From NCBI GenBank assembly GCA_977030845.1, contig OZ365109.1, positions 53,692,001 to 53,756,000 of the forward strand: a stretch of 64,000 nt of DNA, written 5' to 3'. This document shows, piece by piece, positions 8,171 to 53,200 of this stretch. Every line of letters begins with the position of its first letter. Position 1 is the first letter of the stretch. A program made the position numbers and the translations under genes. The stretch comes from Fimbriosthenelais zetlandica. Its lineage: Eukaryota. The notes below the pieces were generated by a model. It saw only the letters and a program-made list of their open reading frames with translations, was not told the origin of the DNA and searched no databases.

Positions 8171-9398
8171 CTTCTGACCTTCATGTATTAAGCATGAAAG
8201 CAGACACTATAGCTGAGAATGGATGCCTTCGCAGTGGCTTGTAATGGACCACAAATGTTTCACCTTGGTAGATACAAACTGCTTACGGTCATATTTGAGG
8301 TGACACAAGAGCGTTTCTACTGCAAGATACTGGCCAATGATCATGTAAACTTGATGATACCATCTGAAGAACTAAAAATGTATTTTGAGTGCAAGCAAGA
8401 ACAATTAGGGAAACTAAATCTCATCAGTATGTACTTCAGATACAGATCAATTTGTCAGTGATTTTTTACATCGGTAAACTCCCATGCACGCTTTTAAAAC
8501 TAAATGTATTTATTTTTCCATATTGTCTTGAGCGTTAGAGCGGTGTACAGTTTTACATACAAGGATATGATCAATGATATGGACCACCACATCTGGAACC
8601 TCCAGGCCTGCAACTATCACCAAACCCTGAAATCAATCATCCAAACGCCCCACTTGTAGAGGCCTGCCTGCAGGCCCTTTGAAGTCAAGCTCCTTTTATC
8701 AGAGGAAAGCAAATTTCCCAGCACCCTGACACACATTAGGGAAGTATTATTTCCCCACAAGGTGCTAGCCCCTTTAGAGGCATTCTCTGGAGGGTGTCAG
8801 GGTGTGGGAGGCCTCGCGGCTCCCGGCATTAGGAGCAGTTCATCATCCATATGGCCTTGTTCCCAAGCTCCAGGGTCAATATTATGCAGGTAATTCATTT
8901 GAAGGACAGAACCCGGGTTCAGTGATCTACGATCTGAACCCATAAAACACAGGGAACCTTAGTTAAGTTAGCCCTAGAACCAAGGTCAGATGGGCACATC
9001 AAATATAAAGGGCCACCAAGGGGGTACTTTTCAAAGGTGTTGGTTTAATTATTCAACAATGGAATTCATAGCAGCACGGTTATTGATTGATCTCCCACGT
9101 GAGCATGAGAAGAAATGCCCAATTCATTATTCAGATGATGAGTAATAAAAAAATATCTCGTCAGTTTAGAATTCCAGCAGGTTTACTGCAAAGGCGAGTG
9201 TTATCGATTCAATACATTCACAGTTTATATATTCAATATATAGGTCATATTTACTGGACCGTAACTGAAATGCATAATGTAACTGTAATGCATAATGCAC
9301 AATTCCAGCTCCACAGGGAGTGGGTCAGGGAATACAAGATACAAACAAACTGAGACAACAAAAAGATGAGACATCAGGAAGAATCCTGCGGTCCTTAC

Positions 9399-10493
9399 CT
9401 GAGAAAGAGGTTGGAGAGTTGGGGGACCTCGACCATTTCCATTACTTGATTTTCCATTCTCCGATTTGCTTTGGCTGGAGGATATTGAAGCACCACTTCC
9501 GCTGGATCCCTGAGATTCCTGAGCCTGCTGTGCATGTGACTGAGCCTGTTTGGCACTTTTCGCAGCACGAACCTGCTGTGCAGAAGCATAAGTGGTGTTC
9601 GCCAAAGCAGTACGAGCTTGTTGCATGGTAACGTAATTTTCATTTTTGGTGGTGCCAGACGTGGAAGAGGCTGCAGAAGCTGCAGCTTTTGCTTCTTTAG
9701 CTGTAGCGTAAGTGTCAGGTTGCTGTGCGGGAAGCGGTTGCTGGACAGTTGAATACAACGGTTCACTCCCATATCCAGAACGTGCTTGCTGCACAGTAGC
9801 ATAATGATCCTGAGCCTTCCTTATCTTTACAGTCCCGTAGTCACTGTCCTTAGAGGATCTGGAATCCTGAACGGTTGCATACGTAGGATTGGCCAATGAT
9901 GACTTCACATCTTTGACACTGGCATAAGTGCTCACTGACATTGCCTCATTGACAGTTGCATACGTACCAACCCCCTGGGATCCCCTAGCCTCTTGAACTG
10001 TGCCATAAGTTCCACTTCCACGGACCTGTTGCACGCTGGCGTAGGTCCCGCTGGCGGCCTGCTGCTGTGCCCTGCGAACCTCTTGCATGGTGGCATAATT
10101 GCTGTCAGCTTGGCTACTCCGGCCCTGAGACACTGGCACCTGATTAGCTCCAGGTGATCGACCATCTCTGGACTGGCTAGCTCGAGCTTGTCTTTGATGC
10201 TGATGGGTGTCATGCCGTCCACATGTACATTCTGGAGGGATGGCTGGAAGGACTCTAACCTTCTGCATTTGTAAAGTAACGTCAGGCGGTGGCTCTGAGT
10301 GAACGCGTTGACGGCCCTCCCGTTCAATCTGCATCTGGGCCATCTGCTGTGCAGTAGGCTGCTGTCCTTTACTCTTGCTACTACTCTTATCTCCCTTCTT
10401 GCCATCTTTCTTTTGTTCCTTTTTGCCATCTTTCCCTTTATCTTTGGTCTTTCCTTCCTTCTCTTTCTTATCTTTTGACTTCTTAAGCGGCAT
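9399..10493 (-). CDS. Large coding exon (365 codons from ATG, MPLKKSK...PLSQ|): Lys-rich N-terminus followed by a tandem tyrosine-motif array; candidate alternative first or cassette exon
   Basis: Part of the 422-aa ORF 9225-10493, with Kozak gcaccATG and elevated GC. Donor CAG|GTAAGG at 9399 is phase 0. An upstream acceptor (gtgtcttctaag| at 10550) opens the same frame in phase 1 immediately after an in-frame stop. Confidence 0.8.
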
Positions 10494-13400
10494 GGTGCTT
10501 GTGCTGGTGCGGGTGGATTCCTCTGGGGTTCCACAAAGAGTATGAGTGCCTTAGAAGACACATGTAATCAAGGATTACTTCAAATGAATCAGTGGCATGT
10601 ATGCTACACTATAGGGTTCCCTCTTTAGTTAATCATAAGGCTCTGATAAATCCCTAGAATATTCAGCAGTATTCCTTTTAGAGGTAGTACGTAATGATCT
10701 CTTCAAGGCAATTATTCCAAAAGTTAGGCAGAATAATCTCATTGATAATACCAAAAGACTCACATATTCATGAAATTGCCCGACACGTGGCTGTAGCAGT
10801 TTTATATGATTTCGTATTACCAGTCCTTCAAGCTATGAATAAGTCCACAGAGGCCTTTCTAGTAGAGGCTTGGGCATGTGTTTAATAAGCATAAGGGGTC
10901 TGTATATTGTCTTGCTTGCCTCCAGGGTATATGGCACCAACATAGAGCAATGCTTTCATCCCTCCTGGTTGGCAACAATCACCAAAGGCACCCGAGTATA
11001 GTACAACCTGCAAACCTCCTTGTATTGAGTACTTAACCCCGGTTGTAGAAGCAATATTTGGCTTTAATCCAGCCTTTGTATGATCAATGCTTTACACCCT
11101 ACGAACACCCGGTGTCCATTCAAGCAGCAACCGGTGATGAAATCCAGAAGCCATATACAACTGGCTTTATTATACGGTCAAACACTAGGAGATTGTATGG
11201 AACAATATTTGGCAGAATGAGTCAGGCTGTAACCTGGGATTAGAGCAGAAATGTCTGTGGTTTGTGGCCAGTATGAAGGGCCAACCACAGGTTTTATACA
11301 CAGTGAGCTTTTCTTATAAATATAGCCTGCTGGGCAGCTCTCAGATAACAGTCGTGAGTTGGGACTTTTTCTGCTCCTTTAGACCTTCGTGACATGGCAT
11401 GGTAAGGTGCCTAATGGGATGAAGGGGTTGGGAGAGGCGGGAGTCAATATCAAGGTGATAGCTGGTAAGATTGAGACGGGGCTAACAGTGGTAGGGAGCC
11501 AGAACCATTACTTGATACTGAATCAATACCAGATACACTTAGATCACCCCGAGATGTCCTCCAAGCACACAACCTTCAACTACAAGTCAAGAATGCCATA
11601 CAATATCGACCCATTATGTCTAGAGATTATATGTGTAGTGATTTTTCACAGTAGTTCCTCCAGACAGTGTCTTTTCAGTGAGTAACTCCCCCAGTCTTTT
11701 TAGGCGTAAAGAGCCCAGTAAGAGAAGCTAGTAGTGTGAGTTAGTGTAGGGCATTGAGAGGAGCTAAGGGAGGGAGGGCCATAATAGCATTATGCCAGCA
11801 TGAATACAACACAGTGTGATCGATCCACAGTCCCTTTCATCAACTCAAAGGTCCCCTCCTTCGCTATTTTCCTTCTCGGCAGTCTCTATAAGGGTATGTC
11901 TATCATGCTAGTGGCAGGCAGTTTGCCAGTCATAATTGATGGAAGTAAAATGGCAGTTTTCGGCACTTGAAGGTGGAAGTCAGTGAGCGTTTCTGGCTTC
12001 CATAAACAAGTGTTGTCTGAAATTATTAGCTCAGGAAATGATGGAGGGATGGTTCTGGTTGATATAAATGAATCTGCAGCCCACACGGGTAATGGGTTCA
12101 ATGAAAGATGCAGCTTGTGTCAATACTGATTTATCGCAGATACAATGAGATCATTCATAGATGCAAACACAGCTGTATTGCCATGAAATCCATTATCACT
12201 CGATGTGATCCGGTTATAACATTTGTCTGTATTAATCCCAATATAACCTACGGGCATCCTATACGTTGGGTACTATCCGAGACTTTCTATATAGTTATCC
12301 AATATCCTGCATACAACTTAGGTGATTATCTCTTATTGTCCATTCAATCAATCATATTGCCTGTGTGCCTCAGGCCTGGGACATGAAGTCAGGAGTGTGA
12401 CAAGTTTCAGCCATCTCCTCATAGTCCACTACATAAACACTCAATCCCAGCATAAAATCGGCTGCGGGATAATGCCCGTTAAGAGCTGTACGCTGGTCTG
12501 ACCATTGTATTCCTTCTTTCTTGCCATCGAGTGATCAGCCGCTTGATGGAGGGCTGTCAGAACTGCAGTTGGAAGCTGTAGAAGAGGAGGGGGAGGAGAT
12601 GGGGCAAGCCTTTGGCAGCTGGTCTGTGGTATTGGAAGGCATCACCAGCATCCGAGCAGCACACAGAGAGAGAGGGAGATGTTGGCCTAAATCTGAGCAG
12701 AAGCTCAGGCAGAGTAACACAAGAATCCAGTTACAGGGGACACTTCATATTTCACATCTTATATCGACCCAACAGTTCTTTTTTCTTTTCTTAGCAAGCT
12801 GTGAAATTGGTACGCTTTATAGGCTTAAACTTAGTAGTGCAGAGACTAATAAAATTCCATATACTTGTTTAATTTTGTTTCCTGATAGAAAATATATTTA
12901 GTGCTTCAGAAATCATTGCACTAATGTAATGCAATTAAAAGGAATAACGGTTGCATAAATGGAAACCAGAGTTTTGTGTCAAGCAAAATAATGACATCAG
13001 AATGGATGATGTTAAAAATGCTTTTTCAGGTCACATATTGTTGATTCGCGAATATCCCCAAAAGCAGTGGATGATCCGAGCACATTGTCATAATTCTCTA
13101 TGGCTCATAGCTCCATGGTATTGAGTGAGTGAATGGATGTGTGAGTGGCACTAAGGATAATGTGGCATGAGCCACATCCAGGGTTGTAACAAGAACACTT
13201 GTCCAATATTTACAAACCAACCAACCAGTCCTACTCCGACTATTGCTCGCTGTTGTTTAGACACCGTCCCGTCAAAAGATATCCAGGCAAGCGTAGCAAG
13301 TCTGCGACATCAGCAATTGCCATGCACGGTGCTAGGCTAATAAGTGCATTGTGGACGCCATTATGAACTTTTGCCTTACATATAATTATGAGCATGAATA

Positions 13401-48321: not shown

Positions 48322-48447
48322 CATGTGTGGTATGCTTGTGTGCCCAATGGTTTATCAATATTGTAAAGTTTTGTTCATACTTAAACCCTGTAATATTTCT
48401 TAGCTTTTTTTCTTAAAAATCCCAACAGGACTGGTATGGGGGCCTAC

Positions 48448-50250
48448 CTTGCGCTCCTCCTCTAGAAGTTCCAGTTCTACTCGGACCATGTCCACGTCTG
48501 ACTCAGGTCCATACAGGATATCATCCTCCTCATCCTCCTCATTTCCCACCCCGCGACTCTCCCGAGACCGACCATCCGTGAAGGGTGACTTATAGATCTC
48601 CTTCTCTATACCATCCATGTCCTCCTCCCCATCCTTCGATTCCTCTTCGTCGTCCTCATTCATCCCTTCATCTCCGCTCTCTTCCCTCTCTTCCTCCTCC
48701 TCCTCTTCGTCCTCCTCCATATCCTCCTCTTCGCGGGGGGCATACTTGCTGGTCTTCCTCAGGATACCTTGGGGTTTCTGGCACAGTTTGATGACGGGTT
48801 TGTGCATATTCTCTGAGGTCTCCAGCACGATGACTTCATCATCGATATCGTAAACGGTCTCAGTCTCGTCGAAATAAACCCTCTTTCTCTTGCTGGATGG
48901 AGAGATATCATACTCAATGGATTCCTCAGTGTTGAGTGTTCGTCTGGGAGAGGTGGGTTCACTGTCGAAGGTAGTGTGTTTCTTACCGGGGCTAATCATA
49001 AAGGCATGGGTCATCAGTTCCTCTTCACTGTAGTACCTCCTGGCCTCGTCTATATTGGACGGCCTACCGTATGGAGGAGGTGGATGCTGAGCAGTCCTAT
49101 CCCAAGCATGACCACCACCACCTATACCACCACTGCTCCACTGAGACTTCTGCGGTGGAGCGAAAGGTGAGGCTCTCAGGTGGCTGAACTGGTAGGAATC
49201 ATCATCGAGTAAGATCTTGCGCCTGCCAGTGGTAGGGGAGGTCACGTAGATGTCCGGGATCTCCCGGCGAAAGTAGCGTCTTCGAGAGGAGCAGTCGGGA
49301 GGCTCGAGCTGGACACCGCTAATGATAGGCTGGATGATGGTCCCAGGAGCAAGTTTGAGGAAGTGTTCTCTCTTGGGACTACCACCGGATGGTTTACCTG
49401 GTGGCTCATTGGAGTAGTATCTCTCGTCCTCATACCTCCCCGATCTCTCCTGGTGGCCATAACTACATCCTGAGAGATCCTGAGGGGAGTTACTGATGTT
49501 TTCCTCACTGTTGTAGTAGTATATTTTATCATAGCCATCAAAGTAAACTCTCCCAAGACCTGCGTCCGACCACCTTCGACCTCCACCGATGCCATCGTTG
49601 GCTGTCAGTGACTCCTTCCCGTCAGAACTGGAGGAACACGTGGTGGAGTCACTGCTAAAGGCTGGCTTCCTCCCGTAGTAACCAGCGTCAGTACTGGCTG
49701 ACCTTCTGTGACCTTGGCTCCCTCCTGGGTATCCCCGGTCACACCTCTCATCTCCTCCAGTACTGGGGGCCCTCCTGTGCCCCCTCTTTGTGTACTCATT
49801 GTGTATGCCCTGATGGTAGATATCCCCATCTCGTTGAACCACATATGGATCACCTACTATATTACTGGGGCCCCTTCGGTGACAGGCCCCATGACAGACA
49901 GGTCTTCTGTTACCTTGCCTGCAAGGACTGGCAGATCGCGACCTTTGCTTTGGTCTCTGGGGGATCTGCTGCCTTTCTGGGTTGATCGGGATGGGACGGA
50001 ATGTCCTTTTGGAATCGTTACTAGGACTTGGTGACCTCCGCTCTCGGTCGGCACTCAGTGATCTCTGGTTGACACCGAACAGTTTCTTGGTGTGGCACTC
50101 ACCGCCGTAGCTTGAGGAGCGGCGGTGGCTGCCGGAGCGTGGCTGTCTACGACTGCTGCCATGCTGCCTGGATCTGTCACCGTAAGCACACTCATTGTCC
50201 AGCTGATCCCAGCTCAGTGATTTGTTGTCTGCCCGTGAAAATCTCGGCAT
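48448..50250 (-). CDS. Large coding exon (601 codons, MPRFSR...EEERK|) for an intrinsically disordered Ser/Arg-rich then acidic region; candidate alternative first exon of the minus-strand gene, or a nested gene
   Basis: Part of the 663-aa ORF 48400-50391, with GC well above the flanks. ATG at 50250 has A at -3 (gcaagATG). Donor AAG|GTAGGC at 48448 is phase 0, and the sequence turns AT-rich immediately after it. Confidence 0.75.
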
Positions 50251-53200
50251 CTTGCGGACCTTCTTTTCAGCGGGTATAACGTAAAGAACTTTGAGGATTT
50301 GCACCATGTTATGTAAAAGTCCAATATGATGAGAGTACAATATTGTTATAGGATGATCAGGAGTAATTTGCTCACACAATCTTGTCCACAAAAAACCTCA
50401 AGAGGCTTAAAGTATCTTGGAAATAATAGGACTATTCTTGATATGTTAGTATATTTTTCTTCTTCAAGATAATTATCTCAGGAATTGTAGAGGGTAAACA
50501 CTATGCTGGTATCAAAGATCCATATAAATCCAATCGAGCCTAATAAACCTGGCAGATATATGCTGTATACATGCAAAGGCATGTCTGTATTTCAAAGGCA
50601 CGGTTACAAACTGGCAAAGTAATGTCCTTGACTAAGATACATTACATGGAGTCGCAATGTTTCAGTCAAGATTAAAGGCACTTTTGTTGTTAAACAAAAT
50701 GTACAATTTTTTCCTGGTGAAGAGAGGAATTCCTCTCTGGGCCTATGGGGTTTCAGTCTTAGATAGTTAGGAGGCCTCCTCAGTGACAGATGACAAAGGA
50801 AAGCTTTTTAACTGGCTCTTGTTTTCCACACTGGACCAGCCCCTTGGGACTTGTTCTCCTGATCCAGTACCTCCAAGCTGGTACAATGACCATCTAGACC
50901 ATCCGATAATAAAAATATTATTTCTTTTAAAATAGTAGATAAAAAATATTCCTCTGGGTGTTATGCTGGATTATTCATTCAAACAAAGATCAAGATTCAG
51001 ATCAATTGTCATAAACGGTGGAAATGCCAGTAGTATTAGAAAAGTATTGTAGGTGTATTACTTCTAAATATCCAAAATTTTAAGGAACGATTTGTAAGGC
51101 ATTCATGTAGATGTCAGTCGACAGGAAAGTGCACTTTTTGATATTGGAGGTTTTCTCCTATGGCATAAACAAGTGGCACCACTATTTAGAAGATCACTAG
51201 AAATCAGATTATGTAACATTTGCATTAAGTATATCCAAAGGCAGTCCACTTAAAAGCAGTTATGATTTTAACATCTCACAAGGTTTGGCTTCCTAAATAT
51301 GAAAAACAAACAGATCCACCTTCAATGAACAGAAATATAGCTAATGAAGAATCCAAGGTGTATTTTACATTGTGTCTTCCTTCAAAATTTGCAGGGTTAA
51401 TCCCATGACTTTTCACATGTAAGATTGTAGTTGTTGCATTTGCAAAGTAATAAGAGTGGGGCTTTCAATGGTGGATGTATTATCCTTGGTAACAATATTC
51501 CCAATGTTGTTACTGACTATGTCGCAGCCTGTAGGGTGTCCAGACAATCCAGGTGGGCTCTCCAACCTCCTCCAATAGGATTTACTTCTCCACTGGAGGA
51601 GGTAATAATCCACTGAGGGCACACTTCCTGGGTAGGGACATTTTACATGTACCCTCCCCCTACTCCAGTACCCTACACCATTACCTCCTACAACCCTCCC
51701 ACCCTCACCCCCCGGTCACAGTCATCTTCCAAGCATCTTGGGACACTTTATAGGGTACCTTTCTGCCTCCTCCTACTCCGCCTCCACCTACTTGTCCTGC
51801 CTGACTTTTACTAATTCATAAATACGGACAACGATCGCCAGGTGGTGTTGCTTAAAACAATGGCCAAGACCAAAGCTTGTCCCGCCTCATTCTATCAACT
51901 AGTTTCACTAGCAGATGATCTCCATCAAGAGATACAGTACAGCCCAAAATGATTGAGAACCTTGTCAATTTTGGGAAATATCCATAATGCTATTTAATAA
52001 TAACATACCTGTCTGGTGTAGATCACATAAGATGGTGATGGAAGTCTGAAATCAGCTCTTTTATACTTTTGACTGAGTTTGTTTGTTCGTTAAATATCAT
52101 TATGGACTGTGAGTAAAATTAACAAGGTTGTGAATAATTTTGGGCTGTACTGTAATATGGCACGTGGGGACACATGCTCATGTCCTGACATTTGTCAAGT
52201 ATGGAGTTCGAGGAGAAAATCTTGCTTTTTCAAAATTGTATCTCTGGACTAATGGAGACATGTGCGGCAGAAAGTTACCTGAGATTTTTTAATGGCGTTT
52301 CAAGGAATGCACAAGCAATGTTAATGGGGAAGGCTATATGGTGGAAAAGTGATGAAATTGACTCCAATGTGTGTAACGCAGAATGTCAATCAAAATTAAG
52401 GTGAGGCAAACGAGTACAGACCTGTTTAAGACAAGAAATTAAGGTAAGTTTGACAGCAACAATGGTGAAGTGGTTAAAATAGCATCAAAATTGTAAAATG
52501 GCAGAACCACAATGAAGCTATACCATACTTCGTCACTAAATCATGGACCACTCTGGGAAAATGATTCTCTGGACACTTCACCCAAATCCAATTAAAATGA
52601 CGAGACAATCATTAATGAATTTGTCTCTAGATAGAGCCATCAGTGGCCACCCTCCTCTCCCCCTCCTCACTGCTGATTAGCACCCTTTGCTAGCCTCTCT
52701 TCCCTACTCGTGCTCCTTCCAAATGTCAACACCTCGCCTACACTTATGAGAAAAATCCACCAAAGGAATCTCACTCCTACAAGCGGGACATATTTAGCAA
52801 TCCAGGTACTCAAAGCGGTCTAATGGTGAAAATAATGTGGAAAACCATGCCGTCCTTGCCTTTATCGCTGCAAATTATTTTTCTTTCGCGCCGCAATTGT
52901 ATAAATTTGACAGGATCGTGATTTGGCTAGGAGAAAATCATGTTATGTTTTGTAGAGTGCGTTAATTATAGCTCGCAGCGTTCATGGAATGGTGAGGATG
53001 ATAATTAGATGCCGTTATGATGGCATAATGGTTATATTCGTAATTAGTACAACCAAATATTTATACATTTTGTGGAAGTTTTAACACTTCAGGCATATTC
53101 CTAATTAGAAATACCCACATGTGGATGTTCTAACACTATAGTAATTAGTAAGAGCCAGGGAACTTTTGTTGAAGGTCTAACGCTCGAAATGTATGACCCA

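Follow-up and report, generated by a model that had tools for sequence, protein, structure and literature searches.

A conserved array of twelve tyrosine motifs on a first coding exon of Fimbriosthenelais zetlandica as a candidate multivalent SH2-docking platform

What might be the function of a protein segment in which tyrosine, the sole aromatic residue, recurs a dozen times in nearly the same short setting? The question is raised by an open frame on the minus strand of the window, by which we mean the whole 64,000-nt stretch of Fimbriosthenelais zetlandica DNA analyzed here (OZ365109.1, positions 53,692,001–53,756,000 of the forward strand; assembly GCA_977030845.1). The exon in question contains 13 tyrosines (residues 133, 151, 163, 178, 190, 205, 219, 231, 241, 247, 262, 287, and 302), all located within a span of 170 amino acids, while the other 192 residues include none, and Phe and Trp are absent from the whole exon. 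Twelve of the tyrosines fit the pattern Y-[AGSV]-[TS]-[VMA], in the order YATM, YASV, YGTV, YATV, YASV, YATV, YGTV, YATV, YSTV, YATA, YVTM, and YASA, and form an array at residues 133–305 (positions 9579–10097, minus strand), running exactly from the first tyrosine codon to the last motif residue; the thirteenth (Tyr241) stands in an off-pattern YGSE. One unit is contained in the sequence EPLYSTV (residues 244–250; 9744–9764, minus strand). The original prediction, made from the nucleotide sequence, had named the twelve motifs, their order, the EPLYSTV sequence, and the extent of the array, all of which are reproduced exactly in the minus-strand translation.

The regularity of the array is far beyond chance. 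Given the exon's own composition, the probability that a tyrosine fits the pattern is 0.0156, corresponding to 0.2 expected matches against 12 observed among 13 (binomial P for ≥12/13, 2.6e-21), and the matches never exceeded four in 20,000 shuffles of the exon. The repeat unit is longer than the four-residue motif, with Thr at −1 (7/13), Gln at +4 (8/13), and Arg or Lys at +7 (10/13), together with Gln/Glu at +5 and Ala/Val at +6; most units are spaced by 12–15 residues from tyrosine to tyrosine. At the DNA level, Tandem Repeats Finder detected no repeat in the array at the unit period of 36–45 nt. Codon choice within the motifs is scrambled: Ala is written with three of its four codons, Val with all four, and Ser with codons of both families; third bases agree in 36% of the cases in which motif residues are identical, and the mean nucleotide identity among the units is 54%. 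The lack of a DNA repeat at this period and the scrambled codons together indicate protein-level constraint rather than a DNA satellite, as had been predicted.

Relatives of the exon were sought among 5.8 billion proteins with a word index and, exhaustively, among 1.84 billion cluster representatives with HMMER. The sole relative found in these two collections is a 387-residue protein (hereafter P0001; 64% identity), called on a 1.72-Mb contig (ctg38755) of the ENA sample ERZ25767047. Other searches with the exon were negative: no family was hit in Pfam, no usable match was obtained in a feature search of the ESM Atlas, and metagenome scans with Lys-rich patterns only, and with a degenerate pattern for DVTLQMQKVRVLP, gave no match. 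The exon occurs once in the F. zetlandica genome.

Comparison with P0001 delimits the coding part of the open frame, which extends over 422 codons (9225–10493, minus strand), of which 365, from the ATG to a phase-0 donor (9399–10493), are assigned to the exon. The start codon (10491–10493) has A at −3 and is preceded by an in-frame stop 19 codons upstream (10551–10553); in the orthologue, A likewise occupies −3 and the frame is closed by a stop 13 codons ahead of the ATG, in DNA that bears no similarity to that of F. zetlandica. At the other end, the donor GTAAGG follows CAG in phase 0 (9393–9398, minus strand), with CAG|GTAAGT at the corresponding codon of the orthologue. Translated similarity is confined to the interval from Met1 to this donor, and the tails that would be read through are unrelated. 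Alignable DNA between the two species amounts to 71 bp at the exon end, the flanking DNA being without similarity. All indels between the exon and its orthologue are in frame, leaving 365 and 373 open codons, respectively, and dN is 0.26 with dS saturated and hence not computable by the NG86 method. From the similarity bounded by ATG and donor, the in-frame indels, and the dN of 0.26 at saturated dS, we infer that purifying selection acts on 9399–10493 and that this is a genuine first coding exon. The possibility of an internal exon, using an AG located 30 nt upstream of the ATG as the acceptor, was considered and rejected, because the similarity begins at Met1 and in-frame stops lie upstream in both species.

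The conservation is distributed very unevenly within the exon. All 12 motif tyrosines are matched one-to-one in P0001 with the residue classes at +1 to +3 retained, and the non-motif Tyr241 is replaced by His. Residues of the motifs are identical at 41 of 48 positions (85%), the remainder being changes within the class, as compared with 29–40% identity in the spacers (Fisher P, 1.7e-8), and every indel in the array falls in a spacer. The +3 residue is kept by type, and it is unchanged in both YxxM sites and in the final YASA. Thus, the predicted signature of tyrosine and +3 conserved amid drifting spacers is borne out in P0001, the comparison being a single one since the two protein collections searched contain one orthologue. 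At the level of this alignment, the array is conserved in its motifs and free in its spacers.

Three further segments of the exon are conserved or otherwise distinctive. The N-terminal residues 1–45 (10359–10493, minus strand; 67% identical in the orthologue) are Lys-rich, with 19 Lys/Arg residues; the stretch, polybasic in the original prediction, also contains 8 Asp/Glu and is better described as one of mixed charge. A role of this stretch in association with a membrane or with another protein is conceivable. Residues 65–99 (10197–10301, minus strand; 34/35 identical) form a block comprising the sequence RVLPAIP, a C-x-C motif, and a His-rich tail, and residues 344–365 (9399–9464, minus strand; 21/22 identical) form a C-terminal block leading to the splice junction. 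The RVLPAIP sequence (10236–10256, minus strand), identical in both species and situated 50 residues upstream of the array, matches by regular expression the RxLPxxP class-I SH3-ligand consensus, which is established for Src-family SH3 domains. AlphaFold2 prediction of the exon gave a mean pLDDT of 37.7, with values of 25–32 across the array (from an alignment of two rows), and the array is predicted to be intrinsically disordered. In the same genome, the N-terminal exon of a Src-family kinase was located (L026 1462–1863, minus strand; G000:C10:16628958–16629359), which by itself covers an MGNCIS start of the myristoylation/palmitoylation type, the unique region, and the whole SH3 domain, with its ALYDY sequence. 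Complex prediction of this SH3 domain with residues 62–104 of the tyrosine exon gave a score of 0.18 (mark, 0.34), which speaks neither for nor against docking.

Before the identity of potential SH2 readers is considered, readings that dispense with phosphorylation or with function should be weighed against these data. That the frame is a chance or decaying one, as the absence of a Pfam family and the single relative might suggest, is the least credible of them: 365/373 codons have stayed open despite saturation of the synonymous sites, only in-frame indels have been admitted, and a start codon and a consensus donor are kept amid flanking DNA without similarity. Scarcely more probable is a set of YxxPhi sorting signals to be read by the μ subunit of clathrin adaptor complexes. 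Y-x-x-[LIMVF] does describe 10 of the 12 motifs here and 11 of the 12 in P0001; however, YATA and YASA are off-consensus, and the strong conservation at +1 and +2 is not called for by the signal. Moreover, such signals work on the cytoplasmic tails of membrane proteins, and the exon encodes no transmembrane segment. A more serious rival, though still an improbable one, holds that the tyrosines are stickers acting without phosphorylation, in which a condensate-forming low-complexity region would make contacts between Tyr and Arg(+7) across flexible spacers rich in Gln, Ser, Ala, Gly, and Thr. The status of tyrosine as sole aromatic, the regular spacing of 12–15 residues, the occurrence of Arg/Lys at +7 in 10/13 units, and the Q/S/A/G/T-rich composition with predicted disorder would all accord with it, but stickers have no need of Ala(+1), Thr/Ser(+2), and Val/Met(+3), which are conserved as strongly as the tyrosine itself; furthermore, the choice between Met and Val is kept site by site, and the one tyrosine outside the pattern has been lost in P0001. 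On sequence logic and one orthologue comparison, a multivalent phosphotyrosine platform in general, as originally proposed, is the best-supported reading of the exon, in line with the orthologue conservation, the coding evidence, and the predicted disorder; the likenesses to ITIM, ITSM, and EPIYA sites that accompanied the proposal are weak.

The individual motifs were compared with the preferences of known SH2 readers. The ITIM consensus [ILVS]-x-Y-x-x-[ILV] is satisfied by two of the 12 motifs here and one in P0001, and the ITSM consensus T-x-Y-x-x-[VI] by none here and one in P0001, in neither case by the same units; most motifs lack the defining −2 residue. The EPIYA core E-P-[IL]-Y-A is not repeated either: there is one EPLYS, whose Glu is Asp in the orthologue (DPLYS), and the other units lack E-P at −3/−2. 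Better agreement is found with the wider Csk-SH2 consensus, pY-[A/S/T]-x-[V/I/M], known from established peptide-library work and exemplified by YSSV of PAG and EPIYA-x-V of CagA. This Csk-type preference, itself derived from vertebrate proteins, fits 7/12 motifs here and 9/12 in P0001. The remaining prediction, that YxxM sites of the PI3K p85 type are present, holds for two of the 12 motifs, both kept in P0001. In vertebrates, the Csk site of PAG is YSSV (PMC3492796), and in p140Cap the Csk SH2 domain is engaged by EPLYA and EGLYA, two sites that serve as substrates of Abl and have been likened to the CagA EPIYA sites (PMC3561454); the link between p140Cap and Csk is also supported elsewhere (PMC7904710). 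As judged from the motifs, a Csk-type reading supplemented by two p85-type sites would give the best fit, ahead of ITIM, ITSM, and EPIYA. It is possible that another reader is involved, since conservation within the unit extends from −1 to +7, farther than an SH2 domain typically contacts.

Altogether, we favor the reading that the exon encodes a kinase-docked, multivalent SH2-docking array, for which the Csk type is the best match, and assign it a probability of roughly 0.5. The layout would be that of an adaptor, with the Lys-rich N-terminus, the RxLPxxP motif next to the C-x-C/His block, 12 units of the type T-Y-A-[TS]-V-Q-x-x-R, and a conserved tail running into the next exon. A tyrosine kinase of the Src or Abl type would dock on the proline motif and phosphorylate the array, and the position of RVLPAIP upstream of the array fits processive phosphorylation. 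The phosphorylated motifs would then recruit several copies of SH2 proteins, probably of the Csk type, with the two YxxM sites serving p85-type readers.

To which gene the exon belongs is a separate matter. Exons of a gene resembling p140Cap/SRCIN1/KIAA1217/CG32809 lie 29–73 kb downstream of the tyrosine exon on the same strand. The first recognizable one of the family, containing LPVVRS, is situated at window −19471 to −19683 (minus strand) and is preceded by TTTTCAG in frame as a phase-0 acceptor; an AIP3 exon (PF03915) follows at window −30076 to −30357 (minus strand), scoring above the Pfam cut-off, more exons come after it, and the last one, of 603 codons, is located at window −61442 to −63250 (minus strand), with relatives annotated as ‘CG32809-like’ in Haliotis and as an AIP3 protein in Capitella. 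The named relatives of the p140Cap-like gene are thus one gastropod and one annelid. The phase-0 donor of the tyrosine exon is compatible with the phase-0 acceptor of the LPVVRS exon, a weak agreement to be expected by chance in one case out of three. In the gene body at window −42529 to −42700 (minus strand; locus L008 region), the sequence reads DVKDRAVLKIYETEAPSVRS, as against ...IKIYRKEPLYAAF in vertebrate p140Cap, i.e., KIYETEAPS where p140Cap has KIYRKEPLYA; from these readings, the homologous position has no counterpart of the EPLYA tyrosine that binds Csk, and the relatives P0014 and P0036 lack it as well. With a gene body devoid of the EPLYA tyrosine, it would make functional sense for many Csk-type sites to be supplied by an N-terminal exon. 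We put at about even odds the possibility that the tyrosine exon serves the p140Cap-like gene as its most distal alternative first exon, in which case the scaffold would gain a multivalent Csk-docking N-terminus that its body lacks at the EPLYA position.

Other open frames were also observed on the minus strand. One of 663 codons at window 48400–50391 is disordered, rich in Ser, Arg, Asp, and Glu, ends in a stop, and belongs to no Pfam family. Another, a short exon encoding MGGCISFDLRL and followed by GTAATG as a phase-2 donor, lies at L003 8740–8790, ~1.2 kb ahead of the first position of the window.

The attribution to the p140Cap-like gene competes with a tentative but appreciable alternative, in which the exon belongs to a separate small adaptor gene lying merely upstream of the p140Cap-like one, the function of the array being unchanged. 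In ERZ25767047, the P0001 exon is located on ctg38755, 108 kb from one end of the contig, and no p140Cap-like or other conserved exon was found in the 78 kb downstream of it. The collinear 3′ half of the p140Cap-like gene, with at least seven exons in order and an identical C-terminus, occupies 2.27–2.29 Mb of the 4.13-Mb ctg39069, i.e., mid-contig, 2.27 Mb of sequence extending 5′ of it. With exon and gene half on different contigs in that sample, the exon would be placed outside the p140Cap-like gene in the other species unless the assembly, in which misassembly is possible, is wrong. Furthermore, no annotated p140Cap/CG32809-like protein in the databases has an N-terminus with the tyrosine array. 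Against a separate gene, no conserved downstream exon of its own was found between the two species, and the next conserved coding sequences on this strand in F. zetlandica are the p140Cap-like exons. The introns are ~2.8 times longer in ERZ25767047 than here, so that the first p140Cap-like exon is expected ~80 kb downstream of the P0001 exon, just past the 78 kb examined. An X-box with a similar flank at proportional positions downstream of the exon in the two species (71.0 kb and 26.6 kb) also tells against separation.

The X-box palindromes, of canonical RFX type, GTTRCCATGGCAAC, are found on the minus strand at window −17237 and −22333 (G000:C1:53674763 and 53669667), flanking the LPVVRS exon. 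In F. zetlandica, the motif lies 26.6 kb downstream of the tyrosine exon and 2.2 kb before the LPVVRS exon, and in the other species (L022/L021 region), where it is also downstream, its distance from the P0001 exon is 70,990 nt, giving a distance ratio of 2.7. The flanks are identical at 8/10 bases between the species, and ~0.03 X-box palindromes per region are expected by chance. The motif may represent a conserved RFX-regulated internal promoter or enhancer. An eight-residue peptide common to both downstream regions, once considered as an exon, was rejected because it corresponds to the X-box DNA motif. In the interval 2,266,650–2,287,897 of ctg39069 (L023), the last coding exon of the p140Cap-like gene appears to be split into segments ~0.7 kb and 3 kb apart, which are collinear with the single 603-codon exon of F. 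zetlandica; the 3′ half as a whole takes up 2.8 times the length that it has here.

Several known systems share features with the exon. One of them is p140Cap/SRCIN1, a Src-regulating scaffold with a disordered N-terminal part and phosphotyrosines binding the Csk SH2 domain (PMC3561454, PMC7904710). The exon resembles it in its predicted disorder, in its EPLY-containing motif, and in adjoining the orthologous gene. In contrast to the two functional sites in the body of the vertebrate gene, however, the 12 YA[TS]V units here are nearly uniform and occupy a first exon of their own, without sequence homology to the vertebrate region and with the Glu of EPLY not conserved. Cbp/PAG1 is an unstructured adaptor in which pYSSV recruits Csk (PMC3492796), and the YSTV, YASV, and YATV units here are of the same type; the C-x-C motif beside the basic stretch could provide membrane attachment in a manner comparable to the palmitoyl cysteines of PAG. 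Whereas PAG spans the membrane and combines a single Csk site with YEEI/V sites for the Src SH2 domain, the exon has 12 similar sites and neither a transmembrane segment nor a YEE motif. p130Cas/BCAR1, whose up to 15 YxxP motifs are processively phosphorylated by Src docked through SH3 and SH2 (PMC10435235, citing Pellicena and Miller 2001), shares with the exon the combination of a kinase-docking proline motif and a disordered array of repeated tyrosines, recognized here from sequence; it differs in that its YxxP motifs are read by the Crk SH2 domain, and the exon has no YxxP motif, SH3 domain, or four-helix bundle. The EPIYA sites of Helicobacter CagA and of Pragmin, which bind the SH2 domains of Csk/SHP2 once phosphorylated (PMC3561454), are alike in the repeated tyrosine, Ala(+1), and hydrophobic +3 residue, but the defining E-P-I at −3 to −1 of CagA is approached here once (EPLY), the other 11 units having Thr, Asn, Asp, or His at −1. 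ITIM and ITSM sites are alike in Y-x-x-V with a small +1 residue and unlike in that the exon does not encode a receptor tail and mostly lacks the defining −2 residue. As far as the searches and these comparisons tell, no described family is homologous to the array.

In concept, the array is a variant of the already known multi-tyrosine docking scaffold, and it offers a clean natural example of motif-level selection with free spacers in a protein predicted to be disordered. Should it turn out to be no more than a lineage-specific adaptor, it would add only modestly to the list of multi-tyrosine scaffolds. A farther-reaching proposal, which we regard as unlikely at present, is that this lineage-restricted exon is a 12-valent, SH3-primed docking array for Csk (and p85), representing independently evolved Csk recruitment outside vertebrates. 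Were that so, an alternative N-terminus would make the invertebrate p140Cap-like scaffold a strong brake on Src, replacing the EPLYA/EGLYA sites missing from its body, or else the exon would specify a free-standing cytosolic counterpart of PAG. The known Csk recruiters (PAG, p140Cap with EPLYA/EGLYA, and Pragmin) were defined in mammals, and to our knowledge, little is understood of how non-vertebrate animals bring Csk to Src-family kinases that are active. For this problem, an array of 12 Csk-type motifs with its own proline motif, beside a p140Cap orthologue, would provide a concrete and testable candidate.
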